NCBI RefSeq assembly: GCF_964204645.1
Contig: NC_134031.1
Location: 11,782,088 to 11,846,087, forward strand
Length of the DNA stretch: 64,000 bases
Direction: 5' to 3'
Source of the DNA: Tubulanus polymorphus
Lineage: Eukaryota > Animalia > Nemertea
Under the pieces are notes generated by a model. That model made no database searches. It was not told where the DNA came from and saw nothing but the letters and a program-made list of their open reading frames with translations. The position numbers were made by a program, and so were the translations under genes. The number at the start of each line of letters is the position of its first letter. Position 1 is the stretch's first letter. Below are positions 11,497 through 50,400 of this stretch, one piece after another.

Positions 11497-12710
11497 TCAG
11501 GTGTTCACGTGAATCCGCGGTATCGTCTACTGTTTTACTTCTGGGTTTTATTTTGAGATTTAAAATTGTATTTCAAGATCGATTTCTATGAAATCTTTAG
11601 TTGATTTGGTGTTTTGGAGGAATTTTTATTTGCTCTACAGAAAATTCATCTTTGACAATTGCGCAAGGTTCGCGAAAAAAAGGTTTTACCAAATCGGGTG
11701 TATGACCTTGATATGCTAATTAGCCATGTGCCCGAATTGCAAATTCAATCAAATTTTATTCTGCCAAAAAATGTTAAATACAATTCGCTTTCCGAGAGTT
11801 AATGGTATGCTGCATGGAACAAAGTTGTTTTGAGATGGGTCTTGAAGCTATTGAGGTCGAGAGATAACCATCTAGATAGTTCGTGAGAGTTCCAAAGTTT
11901 TGAAGACGCTTCAAGGTAATGTCTTGATATTTGTTTTATACATGAATCTACCCTAGACACATCTTCAGGCCAAAAACTGGCCCTGTCAGATTCAAGATGG
12001 CCGACTGGCAGCCATTGTTGTTCGCCAAAATCAGCCCTTTTTACACATTTTTGAAGTTTTCGAGGAAAATTTTGAAGACACTTTTATCAATAACCTTGAT
12101 CATTCGTATGTATTTGTATCCCCCGAGGGCCCATCGGCATGAGAAAAATTGAGTCGATCGGACTCAAGATGGCCGTACTGTGACCTTTTTTGTTCCCAAA
12201 AATGTCAATTTTGGCCTGAATTCTGAGTACTGTAGCTTTCTAATGGTGCGCCATGTTTCATTGCAATTTGTAATGGGTATTCTTTGGAAAGGGATCTTTT
12301 TTATCCGAGAGGGTATTTTTGACCAGGCAATTATGACGCACTTGGCGGCCATCTTGGGGTCATCAGTACTCATTCGTAGGTGGAAAAAAAGTTTTTCCAC
12401 ATCATAATTGATACTTAAGCATATTTTGCTACTATAATCAATTGGAAAGTTGTAGCTCATGACATGTTCTATGATCGAGGTGAGTTTCAAGCTCATTGGT
12501 TTTTTTTATGGCCACCAGGGGGCGTTGAACAATACAATAACTTAGTATTTCTATATTACATTCGTTCCTGCTGTCTGTGTTAACACACGATTTTACTATG
12601 TAAATGATATTGAGCAGGGAGTGTATATTGATAAATATAACCCACAGATTACATCATTTATAAAAAGCAAATCTGACAGGCTGGCCATTGTGCCCCTTGG
12701 GGCTCTTGTT
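11497..12710 (+). mobile_element. HINE family 3 copy (5'-truncated) with a nested HINE family 1 fragment (~11900-12560)
   Basis: Homologous to 17165-17699, 24105-24652 and 52119-52873. 3' end GGCTGGCC + hairpin GCCCC-TT-GGGGC + TCTTGTT. Confidence 0.75.
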
Positions 12711-13359
12711 GTGTTATGAATAAAGTATTATATAACTGATTATTAATGACATTCAATAAATAAACCTTCAAAGAAAGGTACCTAGTGTCTGACATTCTAT
12801 TGAAAAATTCTGGATTGATTTACCGCATAGTCTTTTCATAGTGAGCATTTTAGTATATGAATCAATAAAGATGATTGACAAACACGGGTGTGGTTGTCTC
12901 ACTGTTGAAGATGCTCGATGTTAACAATAATTCTAACCACGTGCGCGATGAAAACAGGGACATCAAACTAAGAATCACTGAATTTCTTAATTACGTGTGA
13001 TTTGAATAGGCATCTGCGCTGCTTTTTCAAGAAGTCGAATCTTAATTGACTCCCATTGCATAGGCTGAAGCCATATATATATAAAGATTAATTGATGAGT
13101 GCAAAACTAACAATGGTTGTCGGTGACGAGACATGACATATATTTCATAGTACGACAAAGACAATGATTGAGGTGGGACAGACAGATAAATAACAGGCTA
13201 ATTGATATTTCACAGGCAACATGAAGCAACAAACTGTACACAAAGAAAATATGAAATTTACACTAAAATATACCCCTTCGCTGCCGAGAAATTTGCTCCC
13301 GCAAATTGAAAATAAATTAAATGTTATAGCGACAAAGATGAATTGAGATTTTGAATTAA

Positions 13360-13997
13360 AGGGGAACTGCAGTGAAAATTTTTTGTATCTATATGTGTTA
13401 GAAACCTTTATAAATACATTGTCAAAACAGCAGAAAAACATTTCATCCAATACTTTATCCAAAAAGAGGGTTTTGTAGAGAGACTACTGCCACCATTTTC
13501 TCCACGTGGCAGACGCTTTTCTCTCGGCTGTGACGTAGTTCGGCCCACTTCGATATGTGTTACTGCTGTTATTCATAGTGTTTTCATCACTTAAAGTCCA
13601 ATAACAGTTCTAAACTGCAGCATAATCCCACATCAGCAATTATATGGATATCTTTCACACAGTGAATGGATAAATAAAAGTAAAAAAGTAAAAACCCCAC
13701 TGGCAGCCCAGCAGGAGTATTTTAATTGCAATTTTCAACAGATCTTCAATGAGTGCATCTATTTGTGTACACACTGGAGTGTGTGATGGGCCGGGATACG
13801 TCATCAATGTTTACATGCCTCACTTTGGAATTTAAATATGGCGGCTCTCATCTGCAGTAAAATCTGCTGGTAATAGTATAAAAATCGTTGTATACAAGTT
13901 AATTAGGAAGAATTGGAAATTTCAACTAGCATTATGCTAAACAACAACAAGAGTAGAAATTAATGGCCAATTATAATTTTTTGACTGCAGTTCCCCT
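13360..13997. mobile_element. Kolobok-like non-autonomous DNA transposon
   Basis: TTAA at 13356-13359 and 13998-14001; 14-bp perfect TIR AGGGGAACTGCAGT. Confidence 0.88.
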
Positions 13998-14598
13998 TTA
14001 AGTAATGGATGGATTGTTTGAATAAAATGATTAAATACATATGATCAGATTAATCCTAAACGAGGTTAAGCCACAATGCCATTGCTGAATGACTTACTAA
14101 GATACCTAGATACTGACTTATGAATAATCTTACACTCCTAGTTGCATAATTTTTTTGATGCAATTAATCACATTTAGTTCAAAATTCATGGGTGTAACTA
14201 TAGCTTATTTCAAACAGCGACAATCAATAGCGCAATAGTACATTGAAAGTGTAAATGTGTTGATCGTCAATCTATATCTTGAATAAAGTCAAGATAAGTT
14301 TGATTCTAAGAGTATTTGAATGTATAAGATGATTAGAAATACAACAGTTATTAAGTGATACGCACATAGGTAAAGTATGACTGTTTGCAATAACCTGAGC
14401 CGATGAGACAGACCTCAGTTGGCTAATACAAATGCGAGTTGCATAGCAAGAACAATTAATTTGTTGGTAACTGAAAATACACTATGACTAATGGAGATAT
14501 TGCAAATTAAAATAAGACGTAGCAAATAACATAGAATGAATTAAAGGTCGCATTGAGTGGCACACAGTTAGATTTGTTTAGATTTAAATCCATTCGGA

Positions 14599-15634
14599 TT
14601 ATGTTTGGTTGATGAAATGTTCCAAGAATAAAGTGTCATATTTATGCTGAATAATTTCGTCGCATATTAGTGGAAATTCGCGCATAAAGTTTGAGTCGAC
14701 GTTTGGCGGCAAATTTTCTAAACCCTGATCTTGTATAATATCAGACAAACGGTTCGCGTGCTTGAAGTTAGATTTTAATGCATCTAAGTCCGATTTGAGT
14801 TGATAGTTTTACCCCACGAGGTTATGAGTAGGCGAATCTGGCTGAAGAACGTTATTACGATGAATATTCATACATTCATTAATTTGCTCCTGTATATGCG
14901 TATGTTTTTGACTCCTCCCAGAAGTTGTTAAATTTCTGGAAACGTGATTCGAGTTCGCGCATTTCAATTTCATAATCGCATAACTCCAGTTTTGGTTGAA
15001 TATAATAATTGTCTATTGTTGCGTAGTCTGTTTTATCAACTTCTGTAAAAACATCAATGAAATTAAAGCAAAATTCACATTTTTCTGCGGCACCGATTGG
15101 ATCAGCTATTCTTTTCTCCAACTCAGATAGTTCAGCGTTTTCAGTTTGAACTGATGCACAGTTGGATTCTTTTTCGGTTGAAGAAATGCATTCTATATGA
15201 GTCGGATCTGTTTGTGCGGAAACAGTAGATTTTATTATTTCTGTTTGTGTGGCAGAAACAGAAAGTTGGCGACACTTAGCTTCGGAATAAAGATCGGTCT
15301 GAGTATTTGCTGCAACTAATGATGATTTCTCTTTCGGCTTTGGATCTTTTTGTTAGTCGCTTTGTTGCATTCGTTTCTTTAGAAATGCCTTCATTCGTTT
15401 TTGGTCATGCTTAATGGTATTCGGTGATTTTCTATTACGTATGCGTACCTTTTCATGAGTCTGTGGTGTATTTGTGTCGTTGTCGTCTTCCGAGTTGGCA
15501 CTAGCAGTTTCCAAATTCCAAGTTATATGCAGGGAAACTGAAGATCCTGTATTTTTCAGATCCCACATAGCTGGTTGTAGTGATATCGGCAAGCTTCGTA
15601 GTAGATCCTGGATGTTCTGGAGAATTGTAGCCAT
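14599..15634 (-). pseudogene. Decayed ~345-codon ORF of unknown function with four (T)QT motifs
   Basis: ORFs 15353-15640 and 14879-15121 are in one frame separated only by the TAA at 15353. The linker encodes NTQTD, ATQTE, SAQTD and SVQTE. After one frameshift near 14880 and one more stop, the reading continues to ...EHFINQT* at 14599. Confidence 0.65.
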
Positions 15635-16511
15635 TTTCAATATTGGGAGTCATTCGCAGTTGATGAGGTACCAAGTGATCTCAGTAAGAAAATATATCTT
15701 TACTGCCCGAGGCAACTAAATAACTAACTTACTAACTCAGTGTTACATTTTCAGCTATATATATATCTTAATATATATATATATATACTTGTTTTTCATA
15801 GGTGTGACAGATAGAACAGTTTAAGCACGACAGAGACAGTAAGAAAAAGACAATGAATGAGGTGCGACAGACAGATAAATAACAGGCTAATTAATATTTC
15901 ACAGACATGTAGCAACAAACTGTTCACAAAGAAAATATGAAATTTTAACTATAATACAGGATCTATTGAAATTATTAACGATTGTCGAGTCTTAAAATTC
16001 CCATCATCAATCATCGAAAATGTTATTCAAGAATGTTCTTATAAATGACAGTTTCATTAAAAGTTCACACTGACCGACATCAAGTCCATGTTAAGAAATT
16101 CTTCGTTAGTTCTTTTTACATCGGTAACTGTGACTACATTCATTTGCAAAGTTGTAGCTCAAGACCTGTTCTATGATTGGGGTGAGTTTCAAGATCATTG
16201 GTTTTTGTATATGGTCACTAAGGGGCTTGAATAGTGAAATAACTTAGTATTATATTGTACTTGTACCTAGGCATATTTTGTTACGACAATCATTTTCTGA
16301 ATTGTAGCTCATGACATCTATGACTGTGGTGAGTTTTAAGGTCATTGGTTTCTGTATATAGTCACCAAGGGTCGTTGAATATTGCAATTATCACATTATT
16401 TTCCCTTCGTTTCTAGTTATTACCTCATAGCTGATAATGTTCTCTAGAGAGAGGGTTTGAAATGTATATTTTAAGCTTATTATCTGTTTTCCACGTCAGA
16501 GTGTCACGATT

Positions 16512-21982: not shown

Positions 21983-23845
21983 CAAGACACATCTTCAGCC
22001 CGAAAACTGGCCCTATCAGAATCAAGATGGCCGACTGGCAGCCATTGTTCGTCAAAATTAGCACTATTTACACTTTCTGAACTTTTTGAGGGAAATTTTG
22101 ATTGAAGATGCTTAGATCAATTACCATGATCAGCACACATTATTATTACACGACTTGGATGACGCAGGCTGGGCTGGGATTCACAAACAAGTTTACGGTT
22201 TCAGGACGCTTTTATGGTCCAGTACTGGATAAAAATATCTCTACCCACAGAAATATCTGCGATGTCTATATCAGACATTCCCTCTGCGAGGTTTTTACAA
22301 GGAGGGGAATGACTTAAAGGATGATGAATGCTCGCTGCTCCACAGCTGCCACCTACACTCATTTGTAGGTGAATAACAGCCTGTTGTATTCCATATCAGA
22401 TTTATTTCCTGAAACGGAAACCAGACCTGGTGGTCAGAAGTGGCTGTCGATTTCTGTATTTCACACCAGCGGGGTCTGTGGATGTGACACGACTCTTGAC
22501 AGCGACGACGAGATCTCTCCACTGTTACAACCACTGAAGAAATAATGATAAATATTTTGTGAACATCTGAGAAAATACAACACACTTTATTTCTTCAGAT
22601 ACACATTACAATGGCGGATTATGAACTCATAACCCGCCAAAAGTATGACAAGGAGGCGCCACAAGACAACCACCTAAAACAGCAATCCAACTAATAGATA
22701 GAACTACTAAAATTTGGATTAGGACTGCCTATCACAGGTGGGAAAAAGTTTTTCCACATTAAATCGATACCTAAGCATATTGTGTAACCACAATCGAATG
22801 GAAAGTTGTAGCCCATAACTTGTTCTATGATTTTGGTGAGTTTCAAGGTCATTGGTTTTATATATGGCCACCAGGGGGTGAATAACACAAAAACTTAGTA
22901 TTTCGATATTATATTTGTACCTATGCATATTTTGTTACCACAATCACTTGCAAAGTTGTAGCTCATGACATTGTCTTTGATTGTGGTGAGTTTTAAGGAC
23001 ATAAGTTACTCTATATGGTCACCAGGGGGCGTTGAATAGTAGAATAACTTAGTATTTCCTTATTAGATTGGTACCTAGGCATATTTTGTTGCCACGATGA
23101 ATTGCAAAGTTGTAGTTCATGACATGTTCTATGATTGTGGTGAGTTTCAAGGTCATTGGGTTTTGCATATGGTCACCAGGGGGCGTTGAGTATTGAAATT
23201 GTTAGATTGTTGAGCATTTGAAACCACTTCCCAAGTGGGTATGGTGTCCCTGGACCCCTAGTTTATTATTATTAGCACTGTCAGAAGATGCATCTCCTCA
23301 CATGGAATTGGAATTACCCAATTCTTTGTTCATGCCACCAGAGGGAGTTAAATATTAAGTACAATTTGTCTATTTATATCGTTACCTATGCATGTTTTGT
23401 TACCACCATTAATTGCAAAGTTGTAGCTCATCACATGTTTCATGATTGTGGTGGTGTTTCAAGGTCATTGGTTTTGCATATTGTCACCAGTGGGCGTTGA
23501 AGAGTAGAATAACATAGTATTTCCATTTTTGGTATATTGGTACCGCAGTATCTCAATCACTTGCAAAATTGTAGCTCCTGACATGTTCTTTGATTGTAGT
23601 GAGTATCAGGGTCATTGGATTTTGATAAATATGACCAGGGAGCGTTGAGTATTGAAATTTTAGATTGTTGAACATTTGAAACCGCTTGCCAAGTTTGCAT
23701 GGTGTCCGTGGATCACTAGTCTAGTTAGTGGTGAGTTTCATTGGTTTCAGTATATGTTCAATGGGTGGCATTGAATATTGAAATTGTCACATGACTGAGC
23801 ATTTCAAACCACTTACCAGCTGGGCATGGTGTCCCTGGACCCCTA
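21983..23845 (+). mobile_element. HINE family 1 copies with ~152-155-bp internal tandem repeats
   Basis: Reverse-complement homology to 43672-45071. 3' ends GTCCCTGGACCCCTAGTT at ~23262 and degenerate ends at ~23720 and ~23845. Interrupted by unrelated DNA at ~22140-22730. Confidence 0.75.
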
Positions 23846-23971
23846 TTTGAAGTTTTCAAGAGAAATTTTGAAGACATCTCAATCAATTTTCTTGATCTTG
23901 TATGTATGTATGTTTCCATCCCACATGGCACATTAGCATGAGAAAAGTTGGTTTCATTGGACACAAGACAT

Positions 23972-41625: not shown

Positions 41626-43671
41626 AATAAATCATAAGAAATTAATGATATACCAGTTTCATTTATGATGAAAAAACTCAAATGAAAAGTCTGGCTTATA
41701 AAGCTGTCTGCTCAGACGAAATTTTCAAAAAAATCTTCATTTTTGGCAATAAAATTGATAATTGTGATTGATCGTTGCAAGTCACAACCAGTTAATCACT
41801 AATTAACATGCATTTTAATAAATCTTGATTCCTCCTTTACAGTGAACTTAGCTTTAACCTAGTAGAGGCTACAAGCCTTTGTAGGCCTATGTATATGCGT
41901 AGGTCTAAAATCTGGACAGATTGGTCCACCTAAATATCGTAAATTTTATTTTGAAGTTCAATCCAATATGTCCGTTAATAAACGCAACAATTATACTGTG
42001 TTTGTTTAGTAAAGCTCAGTACCGGTAGGCCTAAAGCCGCGTAAAACTCGATAAACACTTCAAGCGACACAGCGAACGATCTCCTTTCCCCCACAGCGAA
42101 TGCTTACTCCGAATGTCAAGTGTGAGTCCAGCATACGGAAAGGAGTGTGTTATATACTTGTATTTAGTAAATACCTTGTGCATTTGACAATGATCGGTAT
42201 GTACTGTAGGAAATATAGAGTATTGATGGTATTGATATAGAGGTTGAAGCCTGCGGCCGAATAAAGTAATACATTTTTTTATTTTGATACCTCGTCGACA
42301 TAACAGCTTTTCTCCGCTATATCTCTTCGGCGTGTTTAGTTTAGGCCTACGATTCCCCGGTACACTAAAGATTTATCATAGTAAATACACAGTTAATTCG
42401 GTAAAGAAAAATAGGTATTGTTAAACTAACTCCTTGAAACCCGCAGCCAAATCACTGGTAGTAATAAATTAATTTGTACTCTATTTGATTCTCATGATGA
42501 GGAGAAACTCGCAGCTGATCCCCGGAACGTCGATGTAGTAACACAAGTCGATTCGTCGATGTTTACGGCTCGACAGTGCTTTTAAAATCTAAAATAGTAA
42601 ATTTCCAGTGTATCGGTAATATGATTTGATGAGGAAAATGGGCTATTGTTAGAATCACTGTTTGAAGACCGCGACTGAATGTGAAGTCTGCGGCAATAAA
42701 TTAGTTCATTTATACTTGAATTGATAATCGAAGTGACAGTCCGCCTGCGGGTTGATTTCGGGATGACGCCTCGAAAAACATGTCGCCCCATTCAAATTTG
42801 AATGGGGCTAAATTTTCGATGTTTACGGCCCGACAGCGCTTTTGTAACGATGATTCGTGAAAAAACACGCGGGCTATTTGTAGATCTCAGTGAGCTGAAC
42901 GATATTATATGGATTGTATATGAAACAGCGGTAAGGTAACAAAGCCTATGTTCTTTTGGTAAAAATAGTGTGGAAGAAAATAATAATAGTAAATATAGCT
43001 GCAAAGCAGCGATAACGGGTTTTCTGCACAGTCTTAGAATCCTGTTCAACGGTGGATTTCGACAAAGCATTTGATAAGGCTCAACATCGGCCATTACTAA
43101 AGAGGCTATTAGGAAACAGTATCAATGATAGGTCGTTTAAATGGCTCAGCAGTTATCTCTGAACGGAAACTTGTAACCGAAATCAACGGAACGCCTCCTC
43201 TTGGAATGAGACGGTCTAACTAGTGGAGTCACGCAAGGTAGTATCCTAAGTCGTCTTCTGTTTAATGTCCTGACAAATGACATACACAGTAATCCAAAAT
43301 ATACCAGACCGAGTAAATTTCCAAAACGACCTTAACACACTGTTCGACCAAAAAACTTAATGTTCCGACAAAACCACGGGGACAAAACCAAAATTATGAA
43401 TTGTCGCGGGTGACAAAACCAAAATATTGAATTGTCACGGGCGACAAAACAAAAATAATGAATTGTTGCGGGCGATAAAACCAAAATAATGAATTGTCGC
43501 GGGCGATAAAACCACAATAATAAATTGTCGCGGGCGTTAAAACCAAAATATTGAATTGTCGCGGCGATAAAACCAAAATAATGAATTGTCGCGGACGACA
43601 AAAACAAAATATTGAATTGTTGCGTGCGACAAAACCAGAATAATGAATTGTCGCGGGAGACAAAACCAAAC

Positions 43672-45071
43672 TAGGGGTCCAGGGACACCATGCTCACTTG
43701 GGAAGTGTTTCAAATGCTCAACAATCTAACAATTTCAATACATAACGCCCTCTAGTGACCATATACAAAAACCAATGACCTTGAAACCCACCACAATCAT
43801 AGAACATTTGAGCAGCTATGATTTTGTAATTGATTGTGATGACAAAAAATGCCTCGTTACCAATTTAATATGGAAATACTAAGTTATTCTACTATTCAAC
43901 GCCCCTGGTGACCATATGCAAAATCCAATGACCTTAAAACTCACCACAATCGTAGTACATGTCATGAAATACAGCTTTGCAATTGATCATAGTAACAAAA
44001 TATGCCTAGGTACCAATCTAATAAGGAAATACTAAGCCATTCTACTATTCAACGCCCCCTGGTGACTATATGGAATAACTAATGTCCTTAAAAACTCACC
44101 ACAATCATAGATGATGTCATGATCTACAACTTTGCAATGGATCATGGTAACAAAATATGCCTAGGTACCAATCTAATAAGGAAATACTAAGCCATTCTAC
44201 TATTCAACGCCCCCTGGTGACTATATGGAATAACTAATGTACTTAAAAACTCACCACAATCATAGACGATGTCATGAACTACAACTTCGCAATTGATCAT
44301 GGTAACAAAATATGCCTTGGTACAAATATAATATAGCAATACTAAGTTATTGTATTATTCAACGCCCCCTGATGGCCACATACTAAAACCAAAGACCTTG
44401 AAACTCACCAAAATCATAGAACACGTTATGGGCTACATCTTTCCAATTGAATATAGTAACACAATATGCTTAGGTATCAATTTAATGTGGAAAAACTTTT
44501 TCCCACCTACGAATGAGTACTGATGACACCAAGATGGCCGTCAATTGCGTCATAATAGGCTGATCAAAAATACCTGTCCCAGGTATAAAAAATCCCTCTC
44601 TAAAGAATACCCATCAGCAATTGCAATGAGAAATGGCAAACCAGTAGGAAGCTACAGGACCTAGAATTCTGGCCAAAATTTACATTTTTGGGCACTAAAA
44701 AGGTCATAGGACGGCTATCTTGAGTCAGATCGACCCAATTTTATTATGCTGATGGGCCTTTGGTAGATTCAAATATAAACGAAAGATCAAGGTAATTGAT
44801 CGAAGCGTCTTCAAAATTTTCGAAAATGTTTAAAAAGTGCTGATTTTGGCAAACAACAATGGCTGCCAGTCGGCCATCTTGAATCTGACAGGGCCAGTTT
44901 TTGGGCTGACGATGTGTCTAGGGTAGATACATGTATAAACCAAATATCAAGACATTACCTTGAAGCGTCTTCAAAACTTCCCAAAATAACTGGATTCCGT
45001 CTATGGACGGACGGAGGGACGAAAAGTGAACACAATAGCCCGCTGGGACTAAAGCCCCAAGTGGACTGAAA
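43672..45071 (-). mobile_element. HINE family 1, full-length (five ~155-bp internal monomers)
   Basis: 5' TTTTTCAGTCCACTTGGG..CCCAG hairpin and (GTCC)n; 3' CAAGTGAGC + GTCCCTGGACCCCTAG; inserted in a T run of the satellite. Confidence 0.85.
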
Positions 45072-46203
45072 AAGAATTGTCACGGGCGACAATACCAAAC
45101 TAATGAATTGTCGCGGGTGATAAAACCAAAATATTGAATTGTCGCGGGCGACAAAACCAAACTAATGAATTGTCGCGGGCGATAAAACCAAACTAATGAA
45201 TTGTCGCGGGCGATAAAACCAAAATATTGAATTGTCGCGGGCAATAAAACCAAAATAATGAATTGTCATGTGCGATAAAACCAAAATAATGAATTGTCGC
45301 GGGCGACAAAACCAAAATAATGAATTGTCGTGGGCGATAAAACCAAAATAATGAATTGTCTCGGGCGACAAAACCAAAATAATGAATTGTCGCAGACGAT
45401 AAAAACAAAATATTGAATTGTCGCGGGCGATAAAACCAAAATAATGAATTGTCGCGGGCGACAAAACCAAAAAGAAGAATTGTCGTGGGCGACAAAACCA
45501 AAATAATGAATTGTCGCTGGAGATAAAACCAAAGTAATGAATTGTCGTGGGCGATAAAACCAAAATATTGATTGTCGCGGGCGACAAAACCAAACTAATG
45601 AATTGTCGTGGGCGACAAAACCAAAAAAAGAATTGTCGGGGCGACAAAACCAAAATAATGAATTGTCGCGGACGACAAAACCAAAATGGTGAATTGTCCA
45701 GGCGACAAAACCAAAATAATGAATTGTCGCCGGCGATAAAACCAAAATAATGAATTGTCGCGGGCGACAAAACCAAAATATTGAATTGTCTCGGGCGACA
45801 AAACCAAACTACTGAATTGTCGCAGGCGACAAAACCAAAAAAAGAATTGTCGAGGCGACAAAACCAAAGTAATGAATTGTCGTGGGCGATAAAACCGAAA
45901 TATTGATTGTCGCAGGCGACAAAACCAAAGTAATGAATTGTCGCGGCGACAAAACCAAAAAAAGAATTGTCGGGGCGACAAAACCAAAATAATGAATTGT
46001 CGCAGCAGAAAAACAAAAATCTTGAATTGTCCAGGCGACAAAACCAAACTAATGAATTGTTGCGGGCGATAAAACCAAAATAATGAATTGTCGCGGGCGA
46101 TAAAACCAAAATAATGAATTGTCGCGGGCGATAAAACCAAAATAATGAATTATCGCGGGCGATAAAACCAAAATAATGAATTGTCGCGGGCGACGAAACC
46201 AAA

Positions 46204-47453
46204 CTAGGGGTCCAGGGACACCATGCTCACTTAAGAAGTGGTTTCAAATGCTCAACAATCTAACAATTTCAATACATAACGCCCTCTAGTGACCATATAC
46301 AAAAACCAATGACCTTGAAACCCACCACAATCATAGAACATGTGAGCAGCTATGATTTTGTAATCGATTGTGATAACAAAATATGCCTCGTTACCAATTT
46401 AATATGGAAATACTAAATTATTCTACTGTTCAACGCCCCCTGGTGACCATATGCAAAACCCAATGACCTTAAAACTCACCCCAATCGTAGTACATGAAAT
46501 ACAACTTTGCAATTGATCATAGTAACAAAATATGCCTAGGTACCAATCTAATAAGGAAATGCTAAGCCATTCTACTATTCAACGCCCCCTGGTGACTATA
46601 TGGAATAACTAATGTCCTTAAAAACTCACCACAATCATAGACGATGTCATGAACTACAACTTTGCAATTGATCATGGTAACAAAATATGCCTTGGTACCA
46701 ATATAGCAATACTAAGTTATTGTATTATTCAACGCCCCCTGATGGCCACATATAAAAACCAATGACCTTGAAACTCACCAAAATCATAGAACACGTTATG
46801 GGCTACAACTTTCCAATTGAATATAGTAACACAATATGCTTAGGTATCAATTTAATGTGGAAAAACTTTTTCCCACCTACGAATGAGTACTGATGACACC
46901 AAGATGGCCGCCAATTGCCTCATAATTGGCTGATCAAAGATACCTGTCCCAGGTATAAAACATCCCTCTCTAAAGAATACCCATCAGCAATTGCAATGAG
47001 AAATGGCAAACCAGTAGGAAGCTACGTGACCTAGAATTCTGGCCAAAATTGACATTTTTGGGCACTAAAAAGGTCATAGGACGGCCATCTTGAGTCAGAT
47101 CGACCCAATTTTCTTATGCTGATGGGCTTTTGGTAGATTCAAATATAAACGAAAGATCAAGGTAATTGATCAAAGCGTCTTCAAAATTTCCCACGAAAAC
47201 TTCGAAAATGTTTAAAAATTGCTGATTTTGGCAAACAACAATGGCTGCCAGTCGGCCATCTTGAATCTGACAGGGCCAGTTTTTGGGCTGACGATGTGTC
47301 TAGGGTAGATACATGGATAAACCAAATATCAAGACATTACCATGAAGCGTCTTCAAAACTTCCCGAAATAACTGGATTCCGTCTATGGACGGACGGACGG
47401 ACGAAAAGTGAACGCAATAGCCCGCTGGGACTAAAGTCCCAAGTGGACTGAAA
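46204..47453 (-). mobile_element. HINE family 1, full-length (four internal monomers), near-identical to 43672-45071
   Basis: Same termini and same insertion position in the satellite unit (AACCAAA|CTAGGGG). Confidence 0.85.
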
Positions 47454-50400
47454 AATAATTGTCGCGGGCGACAAAACCAAACTAATGAATTGTCGCTGGC
47501 GATAAAACAAAAATATTGAATTGTCGCGGGCGATAAAACCAAACTAATGAATTGTCGCTGGCGATAACACAAAAATATTGAATTGTCGCGGGCAATAAAA
47601 CCAAAATAATGAATCGTCTCGGGCGACAAAAACAAAATATTGAATCGTCGCGGGCGTCAAAATCAAAATAATGAATTGTCGCGGGCGACAAAACCAAAAT
47701 AATGAATTGTCGCGGGCGATAAAACCAAAATAATGAATGGTCTCGGGCGACATAACCAAAATAATGAATTGTCGCGTGCGATAAAACCAAAATATTGAAT
47801 TGTCGCGGGCGACAAAACCAAAAAAAAAATTGGCACGGGCGATAATAACAAAATATAAAACCAAAATAATGAATTGTCGTGGGCGATAAAACCAAAATAT
47901 TGAATTGTCGCGGGCGATAAAACCAAAATAATGAATTGTCGCGGGCGATAAAACCAAAATAATGAATTATCGCGGGCGATAAAACCAAAATATTGAATTG
48001 TCGCGGGCGATTAAACCAAAATAATGAATTGTCTCGGGCGACAAAACCAAAATAATGAATTGTCGCGGGCGATAAAACCAAAATAATGAATTGCCGCCGG
48101 CGATAAAACCAACATATTGAATTGTCGCGGGCGATAAAACAAAATTAATGAATAATCGCGGGCGACGAAACCAAAATATTGAATTGTCGCGGGCGACTAA
48201 ACCAAAATATTGAATTGTTGCGGGCGACAAAACCAAAAAAGAAAATTGTCGCGGGCGACAAAACAAAAATAATGAATTGTCGCGGGCTATAAATCAAAAT
48301 TAATGAATTGTCGCGGGCGATAAAACCAAAATAATGAATTGTCGTGGGCGACAAAACCAAAATGGTTAATTGTCGCGGGCGACAAAACCAAAATGGTGAA
48401 TTGTCGCGGGCGACAAAACCAAAATGGTGAATTGTCGCGAGCGACAAAACTAAAATAATGAATTGTCGCGGGCGATAAAACCGTAATAATGAATTGTCGC
48501 GGGCGATAAAACCAAAATAATGAATTGTCTCAGGCGACAAAACAAAAATAATGAATTGCCGCCGGCGATAAAACCAACATATTGAATTGTCGCGGGCGAT
48601 AAAACAAAAATATTGAATTGTCGCAGGCGATAAAACCAAAAAAGAAAATTGTCGCGGGCGACAAAAACAAAATATAAAACCAAAATAATGAATTGTCGCG
48701 GGTGACAAAACCAAAATAATGAATTGTCGGTGGCGATAAAACCAAAGTAATGAATTGTCGCGGGCGATAAAACCAAAATATTGAATTTTCGTGGGCGACA
48801 AAACCAAAATATTGAATTGTCGAGGGCGACAAAACCAAACTAATGAATTGTCGCGGGCGACAAAACCAAACTTATGAATTGTCGCGGGCGATAAAACCAA
48901 ACTAATGAATTGTCGCGGGCGATAAAACCAAAATAATGAATTGTCTCGGGTGACAAAAACAAGATATTGAATCGTCGCGGGCGACAAAATCAAAATAATG
49001 AATTGTCGCGGGTGACAAAACCAACATATTGAATCGACGCGGGCGATAAAACCAAAATAATGAATGGTCTCGGGCGACAAAACCAAAATAATGAATTGTC
49101 GCGGGCGATAAAAACAAAATATTGAATTGTCCCGGGCGATTAAACCAAATTAATGAATTATCGCGGTCGATAAAACCAAAATATTGAATTGTCGCGGGCG
49201 ATAAAACCAAAATAATGAATTATCGCGGGCGATAAAACCAGAATATTGAATTGTCGCGGGCGATAAAACCAAAATAATGAATTGTCGCGGGCGACAAAAC
49301 CAAAATATTGAATTGTCGCGGGCGATAAAAACAAAATATTGAATTGTCCCGGGCGATAAAACCAAATTAATGAATTATCGCGGGCGATTAAACCAAAATA
49401 TTGAATTGTCGCGGGCGATAAAACCAAAATAATGAATTGTCGCGGGCGACAAAACCAAAATATTGAATTGTCGCGGAATGATGCAATCGTGAGTTGAAAT
49501 AATACCTGAACAAATCGATGCACAGACATTTACTTTATATATCTACTTGAACAATCGAGCCTACTCAGTAATATACTCAGTTTTTACGAAACCTGGAGTT
49601 TTTGTTTCAGAGAAATTTGAGTATCAGTATCCGATGCTATATACTAACGTTAACGTTAGTTATCATCGCTCCGTCATGCAAAGTTATACATTTCATGTCA
49701 ACCAGTATCTAAAGGCAGCTGTACAGTGTGTACACACTATATCTGAATACGAGGCTGGAATAACAGGCTCACTTCACGTAGGTTCATGATGAGGAGAAAC
49801 TCGCAGCTGATCCCCGGAACGACGATGGAGTAACACACGTCGAATCGTCGATGTTTACGGCTCGACAGTGCTTTTAAAATCTAAAGTAGTAAATGTCCAG
49901 TGTATCGGTAATATGATTTGTTGAGGAAAATGGGCTATTGTTAAAATCACTGTTTGAAGACCGCGACTGAATGTGAAGTCTGCGGCAATAAATTAGTTCA
50001 TTTATACTTGAATTGATAATCGAAGTGACAGTCGGCCTGCGGGTTGATTTCGGGATGACGACTCGAAAAACATATCGCCCCATTGAATGGGGCTAAATTT
50101 TCGATGTTTACGGCCCGACAGCGCTTTTGTAACGATGATTCGTGAAAAAACACGCGGGCTATTTGTAGATCTCAGTGAGCTGAACGATATTATATGGATT
50201 GTATATGAAACAGCGGTTAGGTAACAAAGCCTATGTTCTTTTGGTAAAAATAGTGTGGAAGAAAATAATAATAATAATAATCACGCGGATATCAATAGGG
50301 TTTTCTGTGAAATAACAGAAAACCCTAATAATCACGCGGATATCAATAGGGTTTTCTGTGAAATAACAGAAAACCCTAATTACGACGATCACGGGAAACC

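Follow-up and report, generated by a model that had tools for sequence, protein, structure and literature searches.

The described systems that come closest to the region discussed here are the Penelope-like elements, the cargo of short non-autonomous transposable elements (TEs) and, at the protein level, the multivalent clients of dynein light chain LC8 (DYNLL). Some viruses recruit LC8 for transport. Multivalent clients such as ASCIZ have a disordered linker that bears several TQT motifs (PMC6607443, PMC5963919). The LC8 motif comprises eight residues with TQT, or a variant of it, as the anchor in a disordered region, and many TQT peptides fail to bind (PMC6607443). Naiad and other Penelope-like elements have an insertion bias for (TA)n, suffer 5' truncation and build partial tandems, the pseudo-LTRs; the terminal repeats of canonical Penelope-like clades contain a hammerhead ribozyme motif, of which Naiads are devoid (PMC8557442). 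Cargo of a short non-autonomous TE is carried along by read-through transduction or within a composite or macrotransposon.

The window, i.e., the whole stretch of 64,000 nucleotides from Tubulanus polymorphus analysed here, contains a region for which a sequence-only reading had proposed a mobile family that uses (TA)n microsatellites as insertion sites, occurs in tandem and brings along its own LC8-binding protein. In our view, the region is probably an ordinary patchwork of decayed repeats, made from a short repeat (X) and a segment (Y), with Y copied as cargo of X.

The X and Y parts lie on the reverse strand and are best read from high to low coordinates. The right copy of X (15790..15958) begins exactly at X's own 5' end (TGTATTATAG), comprises positions 1-174 and has lost X 175-237. 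It is followed by the right TA tract (15757..15789), an interrupted (TA)5..(TA)8 that is the expanded internal TA spot of this copy. Past the spot, 15730..15756 correspond to X ~238-278 (GCTGAAAATGTAACA...); there X stops and Y begins. Y opens with a leader (15635..15729) and continues with a decayed orphan ORF of ~344 codons (14602..15634) and a non-coding, 3'-UTR-like tail (13998..14601), which is 88.7% identical to the copy on contig C10. A miniature element (MITE) is nested at 13360..13997, and the final ~85 bp of Y (13271..13359) are fused to the 5' half of the left X copy (13085..13270, X 1 to ~240, internal deletion ~X 125-178). This copy breaks off at the left (TA)5 tract (13073..13084), a TA-rich spot inside X at ~X position 240. 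Neither window copy of X has the 3' ~180 bp, and the remainder of X was sought elsewhere in the window and not found. A repeat of ~170-190 bp adjoins each TA tract (13149-13270 and 15838-15956 match at 90-91%); the tracts themselves are too short for detection by Tandem Repeats Finder at score 50. Inspection of the sequence confirmed that the ends proposed for the unit have no TIR, LTR or poly(A).

Next to the left tract lies a 361-bp fragment (12713..13072) of a larger, unrelated interspersed repeat with at least 167 candidates of 87-91% identity. The fragment stops exactly at the tract; other copies extend both ways with sequence missing from the window. An insertion of the whole block into this repeat was considered and dropped, since the continuation of the repeat was not found right of 15958. 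A 3.7-kb segmental duplication around the unit was also dropped: the flank repeats in question (12412-12549 and 16114-16251) belong to a repeat family that is abundant and in part very young.

Separate from Y, X is a short interspersed repeat of 415-460 bp, old, present in few copies and unclassified. It starts with T(G)TATTATAGTGTAAATTTC and ends with CTTATAATA. The genome search yielded ~17-19 candidate loci with 70-92% identity, copy counts from this search being lower bounds. On C1, C6, C8, C9 and C11, the 5' repeat, the TA spot, GCTGAAAATGTAACA and ~180 bp more are contiguous, with common ends and unique flanks, and the free-standing copies have no (TA)n at their ends. Most copies carry ACATATAAATATAG at the mid-element TA-rich spot and no true microsatellite. 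True (TA)n is confined to the copies linked to Y, i.e., those of the window, C10 ((TA)7-8) and C4 (~(TA)35). The (TA)n is therefore an internal proto-microsatellite of X, expanded in one sub-lineage only; it is not an insertion target. The tracts that had been taken for the borders of the unit do exist, then, yet inside X and not at unit ends, and what looked, past the right tract, like the 3' end of a second 2-kb copy consists of X's first 174 bp, counted from X's 5' end. Since TA tracts sit inside free-standing X, the idea of a (TA)n-targeting element is largely refuted. The expanded internal proto-microsatellite of a short repeat can evidently mimic a microsatellite-targeting element with tandem copies; otherwise the region has little significance.

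Y is ~1.8 kb long and intronless, with a ~0.7-kb tail behind the ORF. In the 268-Mb genome, searches at the DNA level and, in six frames, at the protein level detected it at only three loci on three different contigs: that of the window (C7), C10 and C4. The locus is not single-copy. None of the X and Y loci (~19 and 3 matches, respectively) is part of a multi-copy 24-30 kb element. In all three copies the end of Y is joined to X position 1 by an identical junction. In C10 and C4 the homology stops at X's own 3' end, as it does in free X copies, after which the flanking sequences are unrelated. Because every copy of Y is joined to the start of X and these two copies end where X ends, Y is cargo copied along with X, and we infer that it was moved by X's transposition machinery. 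The 5' extents vary: C10 is cut at about window 15526-15533 and C4 at about 14682, where a young repeat insertion adjoins; the leader and the first 32 codons of the ORF are present only in the window copy. The identity between C10 and C4 is 94.5%, whereas that of either to the window copy is ~90.7%. A TA tract lies ~190 bp beyond the end of Y in all three; on the 5' side of Y there is one in the window copy only, with 28 bp of X in between. The further copies, on C10 and C4, have neither a 5' TA tract nor an upstream X. That an ORF-bearing segment was copied to C10 and C4 also holds; a family it is not, as the ORF is found in two copies only and the third is a 3' fragment.

The likeness to cargo of short non-autonomous TEs consists in an ORF of non-TE character joined to a short repeat at a fixed junction, in new loci bounded by the terminus of that repeat, in the low copy number and in the variable 5' extents. 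The differences are that X stands outside any assigned superfamily, that no autonomous partner was found here, and that the window copy has partial X on both sides. On this probable reading, the Y-X composite, in which Y is joined head-on to X position 1, was copied at least twice, the window copy splitting off first, C10 and C4 later. X's own 3' end served as the boundary of copying, and Y may have travelled by read-through or 5' transduction, or between two X copies. The window has one partial X upstream and one downstream of Y, and the break in each coincides with the fragile TA spot or is close to it; the MITE landed in the tail of Y later. It counts against this scheme that it takes two deletions or a template switch to explain why Y is flanked by two partial X of like orientation that both break off near the TA spot.

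With Penelope-like elements the region shares a superficial layout, in which a truncated copy, (TA)n, a complete unit and again (TA)n follow one another; it resembles the partial tandems of Naiads, which also counts against the preferred reading (PMC8557442). The unit here, however, has no reverse transcriptase (RT) or GIY-YIG nuclease, its TA tract forms part of a free-standing repeat and is not a target, and its upstream piece starts at the fixed 5' end of that repeat instead of being truncated at random. This genome does contain Penelope-like elements, and they are young. A search for RT- or transposase-encoding elements with the same termini had been suggested; across the whole set of X and Y loci, each with 1.5 kb of flank, C10 only has an RT/GIY-YIG ORF nearby. 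It belongs to a younger element, which begins ~35 bp past X. A 97% identical copy of this element on C1 is without X. The possibility that X is a pseudo-LTR or leader of this neighbour was dropped, given that ~35-bp distance and the absence of X downstream.

How the copying proceeded can be imagined in different ways. X might be SINE-like and transcribed from its position 1; RNA reading through from Y would be reverse-transcribed at the target to give the 5'-cut Y-X of C10 and C4, the window copy would be primed on the internal (UA)n at a TA-rich nick and, for this reason, end at (TA)5, and the upstream partial X would result if the template were then switched to a second X RNA. This retro-type route is conceivable, if doubtful. 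The common X 3' end of C10 and C4 with their different 5' cut points fits it, as do the upstream X beginning exactly at X position 1, six X fragments cut at the 5' end, the Penelope-like elements with RT and GIY-YIG nuclease that are active in this genome, one of them beside the C10 copy, and the predilection of Naiads for (TA)n and partial tandems (PMC8557442). X, however, has no poly(A), tail repeat or pol III boxes, and in the two X loci and window 12700-16200 Rfam (E ≤ 1) gave no match and no tRNA-, 5S- or hammerhead-like part; the missing hammerhead ribozyme alone does not exclude Naiads (PMC8557442). Neither C10 nor the free X copies, which are old, showed a clear target-site duplication, and the 5' cut of C4 adjoins the young repeat, which masks this end. 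The Penelope-like neighbour of C10 is younger than Y-X, its copies being 97% identical. Another six X fragments are cut at the 3' end, and this balance favours neither a retro nor a DNA route. The DNA route would be a composite element in which two direct X copies flank Y (X'-Y-X), comparable to an IS-bounded composite, a macrotransposon or an LTR-like pair; free X would be its vehicle or the product of recombination, and C10 and C4 would be 5'-cut composites. We rate it as unlikely. Considering that 268 Mb contain ~19 X loci, it is very improbable that two of them come to lie 2.7 kb apart in one orientation by chance; both window copies share a derived base (GAAATAT versus GAATTAT in the others), and X has short inverted AT-rich ends, of only 7-8 bp. 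Contigs of public runs that join 13123 to 15846 would also suit a Y-less recombinant, or just another X copy; these contigs are DNA-like, of single-copy depth, and no RNA run contained the stretch. Yet neither window copy of X now offers a usable 3' end, C10 and C4 lack the upstream X, no transposase partner was found, and the two window copies (90.8% identical) are no closer to each other than to other X.

Transposition of Y could be dispensed with altogether if a pseudogene that adjoined an X copy by chance had undergone plain segmental duplication. The very low copy number and the fact that all copies are decayed and differently truncated would agree with this proposal, which is nevertheless improbable: homology of C10 and C4 ends exactly at the X 3' terminus with unrelated flanks beyond, and the three copies reside on three contigs. 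Least of all do we believe in the proposed non-autonomous family with (TA)n microsatellites as targets, tandem copies and an LC8-binding accessory protein of its own. In its favour, elements that target (TA)n are described in the literature (PMC8557442), TA tracts are seen on both sides and again behind all three Y copies, the unit's end recurs past the right tract, and two canonical TQT anchors lie in a Ser/Thr-rich linker with a weak predicted docking to LC8 (see below). All the same, the two sides of each tract form one contiguous repeat that elsewhere has unique flanks and no terminal (TA)n, most copies of this repeat are without a true microsatellite, the 5' tract is peculiar to the window copy and separated from Y by X sequence, and there are just 2-3 copies, none of them intact.

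The single decayed ORF was recovered as described, running from 15634 down to 14602 and broken three times: by an in-frame TAA at 15353-15355, by the loss, compared with C10, of 5 bp near 14915, and by a second TAA at 14809-14811. C10 has AAA at the window stop and five extra bases at the window frameshift; in the ancestor the ORF was continuous. The proposed dN/dS check gave 0.37 over 235 codons (Sd 18, Nd 28), which suggests that the ORF was once coding and had a protein product in the past. An intact copy does not exist in the genome; every copy is dead. The unit does indeed encode neither RT nor transposase, and no GIY-YIG nuclease or recombinase gene either.

The ORF was searched as separate pieces, never as the whole 344-codon read-through protein. 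Pfam (E ≤ 10) assigned no family to four pieces, apart from a chance CBM_25 at 0.16. Word searches with pieces 1 and 2, covering proteins of 0.55-1.75 times the piece length, were without a match, as was a search of the ESM Atlas by features with two pieces, and HMMER with the 137-residue open frame of the C10 copy found 0 matches in 1.84 billion representative proteins. Specifically, no LINE ORF1, Gag or RRM/CTD family was matched by the pieces; a known LINE ORF1, a match to which had been named among the possible refutations, did not turn up in Pfam, word or HMMER searches. An alpha/beta N-terminus with a basic helix had been predicted, and the single-sequence AlphaFold model of the N-terminal 93 residues (pLDDT 66.5) shows a helix, three strands and a long basic helix. 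Foldseek of this model against the PDB returned nothing at E ≤ 0.001, and the Atlas shape search only weak, unrelated rows. The model of the C-terminal piece (pLDDT 37.5) is unusable. With no living copy and no relatives, a comparative study is impossible.

The four QT motifs, NTQTD, ATQTE, SAQTD and SVQTE, are all there (~15143-15304), within ~55 residues of a disordered Ser/Thr/Glu-rich linker, and the C10 pseudocopy, which is 92% identical, retains all four cores at the DNA level. Four QT[D/E] occurred in 18 of 200,000 shuffles of the protein. VAANTQTD and SVSATQTE have canonical TQT anchors, TVSAQTD and CASVQTE are variants; at the sequence level the linker thus has what defines an LC8 motif. 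Like ASCIZ and other multivalent clients, the ORF combines several anchors, here TQT twice and AQT and VQT once each, always with D or E as the next residue, and its SVSATQTE resembles the optimal motif VSRGTQTE (PMC6607443, PMC5963919). Unlike these clients, it is a predicted one only, has no orthologues and is dead in every copy. Complex prediction with two copies of the worm's own intronless LC8 and linker residues 1-80 gave a median of 0.57, as compared to 0.01 for the best of 3 controls; the runs agree in at least 75% of contacts, the partner pLDDT is 47-48, and the score may reflect the model's memory of solved TQT complexes. It weakly suggests docking of the linker to LC8. If the binding were true, the ORF would be a rare transposon passenger with a dynein-light-chain handle. 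We consider it highly improbable that an undescribed non-autonomous mobile element, with its own LC8-recruiting accessory protein (several TQT) and possibly primed at TA-rich DNA via its internal (TA)n, survives in Y-X as a last remnant.

The element nested in the tail of Y had been called a Kolobok. It is a TTAA-targeting MITE of the Kolobok or piggyBac type, flanked by TTAA at 13356-13359 and 13998-14001. The corresponding site is empty in C10 and C4, and the MITE was therefore inserted after the three Y copies had split. Its TIR (AGGGGAACTGCAGTGAAAA) measures 19-23 nt, the 23-nt arms being 96% complementary, and the genome contains at least 44 scored copies.

The TA tracts that frame the ORF-bearing block, a (TA)5 at 13073-13084 and an interrupted one at 15757-15789 (both read on the + strand), are real, if too short to be detected by Tandem Repeats Finder at score 50. 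Each is adjoined by a repeat of ~170-190 bp (13085-13270 and 15790-15958), ~90% identical across the shared part. The window derives from a 268-Mb, AT-rich animal assembly (G000:C7:11782088-11846087). A search of this genome with the repeated end, then with an entire copy, and subsequent alignment of the loci revealed that this end makes up the first ~240 bp of an interspersed repeat of 415-460 bp, here called X. It starts with T(G)TATTATAGTGTAAATTTC, finishes with ...CTTATAATA and has ~19 candidate loci genome-wide, at 70-92% identity. On contigs C1, C6, C8, C9 and C11, X has unique flanks and the identical two termini.

At the site equivalent to the TA tracts of the window, most X copies have CTTGTACATATAAATATAGCTGAAAATGTAACA, no microsatellite, and X continues for ~180 bp more. 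True (TA)n is confined to the copies linked to Y, the ORF-bearing segment: the two in the window, one on C10 with (TA)7-8 and one on C4 with ~(TA)35 and a small local duplication. The 28 bp past the right tract (15756-15730) are X's next piece. The right copy thus consists of X 1-174, TA and X 238-278; the left one comprises X 1 to ~240 minus an internal deletion and terminates at its TA tract, and the remainder of X is found nowhere else within the 64-kb window. The position of the tracts inside X, the restriction of (TA)n to Y-linked copies and the 28 bp that continue X all argue that the tracts are an internal proto-microsatellite, expanded in one sub-lineage, and that the ORF-bearing unit neither targets them nor ends there. 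The sequence-only reading had taken them as insertion target and boundary, which does not hold for a site internal to a repeat with unique flanks elsewhere; its supposed 3' end of a second unit beyond the right tract is X 1-174 of this free-standing repeat. The proposed genome search did yield other copies, but most X copies lack true (TA)n. The X that follows Y on C4 (L004:2230-2400), its internal spot grown to ~(TA)35, has also undergone local duplication of the ~25 bp flanking that spot on either side; it illustrates how a microsatellite can be born, and be unstable, within a repeat.

Y extends on the minus strand from 15729 down to 13271, ~1.8 kb without a nested MITE. Searches of the genome's DNA, and of its six-frame translation with three pieces of the ORF, found it, besides the window, only at C10:5901682-5903024 and C4:13076769-13077266. 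The C10 copy begins at about window 15526-15533 and carries deletions of 180 bp and 2 bp; the C4 copy, which begins only at window 14682, is missing most of the ORF and is adjoined at its 5' side by a young repeat. The leader and the first 32 codons are present in the window copy only. At each of the three loci Y's final base is fused to position 1 of X. Identity is 94.5% between C10 and C4 and ~90.7% between each of them and the window copy, which indicates at least two copying events, each using X's terminus. Because of this repeated use we read Y as a cargo of X. Plain segmental duplication is less favoured: on C10 and C4 a full-length X follows Y, the homology ends at X's own 3' end, and the flanks beyond are unrelated.

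How the X-Y-X layout arose can be imagined in several ways. The two window copies lie 2.7 kb apart in the same orientation and share a derived base (GAAATAT versus GAATTAT); with ~19 X loci in 268 Mb, such proximity is hardly a coincidence. One route is the copying of a read-through RNA at the target, primed internally on the TA tract and combined with a template switch; another is a composite in which two X copies enclose Y; the third is a local duplication that later suffered deletions at its fragile TA spot. All three fit. Since 5'-cut and 3'-cut X fragments are equally common (6 and 6), the inverted ends of X measure merely 7-8 bp, the aligned loci show no clear target duplication and X matches no RNA family, we prefer none of these routes. 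Contigs from three public runs join 13123 to 15846 at single-copy depth, skipping the 2722 bp between the X copies, with 28 nt on the short side; the joint may come from an X locus elsewhere whose sequence aligns to both copies, or from an allele in which recombination removed Y. The public runs matching the stretch look like genomic DNA of single-copy depth, with no RNA run among them.

The arrangement imitates the partial tandems of Naiad, Penelope-like elements that favour (TA)n and place a 5'-cut copy upstream (PMC8557442). The decisive difference is that here the TA tract and both its sides belong to the free-standing X; moreover, the window's upstream piece begins at X's fixed end. On C10, a young Penelope-like element starts ~35 bp beyond the point where Y-X ends at its 3' side, and in the same orientation (L079:7205-9054, i.e., G000:C10:5899204-5901053, minus); its ORFs encode RT (327 aa) and GIY-YIG (161 aa). 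A 97% identical copy at C1:16463495 lacks X, and the element is therefore taken for a neighbour. Neither X nor Y hit any large element present in multiple copies, so nothing ties them to giant TA-targeting recombinase elements.

The decayed ORF runs on the minus strand in a single reading frame from an ATG at 15634 to 14602, interrupted by two TAA stops (15353-15355 and 14809-14811) and, between them, a frameshift near 14915. C10 reads AAA where the first of these stops lies and has five additional bases at the frameshift, so the ancestral ORF was one continuous frame of ~344 codons. Comparison of window and C10 across 235 codons, with 18 synonymous changes and 28 non-synonymous ones, gives a dN/dS of 0.37, which suggests that purifying selection acted during part of the divergence and that the ORF was formerly coding. 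The single ORF with its four QT motifs, NTQTD, ATQTE, SAQTD and SVQTE, is thus confirmed; four QT[D/E] were attained in just 18 of 200,000 shuffles of the protein.

The ORF pieces were searched separately. Pfam offered no family, the word search with pieces 2 and 1 and the Atlas search no match, HMMER with the C10 copy's 137-aa open frame, which best covers the C-terminal domain, none among 1.84 billion representatives, and fold searches nothing; as anticipated, no named family can be assigned. Single-sequence AlphaFold gives a moderate N-terminal model (pLDDT 66.5) of a helix, three strands and a long basic helix, in line with the predicted alpha/beta start and basic helix. The C-terminal model (pLDDT 37.5) is unusable.

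The motif bound by the dynein light chain LC8 comprises eight residues with a TQT anchor; VSRGTQTE is the top binder, and numerous peptides with TQT fail to bind (PMC6607443). This anchor is present in two of the four ORF motifs, AQT and VQT in the others; SVSATQTE comes near the optimum. The genome's own LC8 gene is intact and intronless (94 aa, L071:1474-1758, i.e., G000:C4:24591340-24591624, +; full Pfam Dynein_light match, 147 bits); at C4:3079870 there is another, partial match. In predicted docking, linker residues 1-80 and a pair of LC8 chains reached a score of 0.57 (runs 0.64, 0.55 and 0.57; best of three controls 0.01), in a range, up to 0.60, that held just 5 of 78 solved complexes yet all 4 passing mismatches. 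Partner pLDDT was 47-48, and contacts agreed between runs to at least 75%. The predictor thus lends weak support to docking, and the pass may stem from solved TQT complexes that the model had learned. Of the whole locus, only the TQT cluster might reward further interest.

Taken as observation, the sequence-only reading was largely correct; as interpretation, largely wrong. Y was indeed copied to C10 and C4, but a mobile family is hardly made of three loci, all dead. What remains is a composite, found at three loci and dead, in which an orphan ORF segment is joined to an unclassified low-copy repeat with an expanded internal TA spot. As cargo carried by a non-autonomous repeat, it falls into a known kind.

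The nested TTAA element, present as described like the tracts and adjoining repeats, is a 638-bp MITE (13360-13997) with TTAA on both sides, inverted ends of 19-23 nt and at least 44 scored copies. The paralogous C10 and C4 loci display the empty site (GAATAAGT), which points to a late insertion. Left of the block, a 361-bp fragment (12713-13072) belongs to a larger interspersed repeat with at least 167 candidates at 87-91% identity. The fragment is cut by a young repeat at its left and ends exactly at the (TA)5; other copies extend both ways, and its continuation is absent from the other side of the block. The ~409-bp repeat at 12302-12710 is 99-100% identical to all 40 scored places, of 2916 candidates genome-wide; it is a short element, both very young and very abundant. 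Its older relatives, which contain ~147-bp subrepeats, occur at 16114-16388 and other window sites. Several tandem or nested copies of the flanks' abundant family lie at 43600-47500 and 22700-23900, and a strong AT skew (0.24-0.26) at 44-50 kb coincides with such copies.
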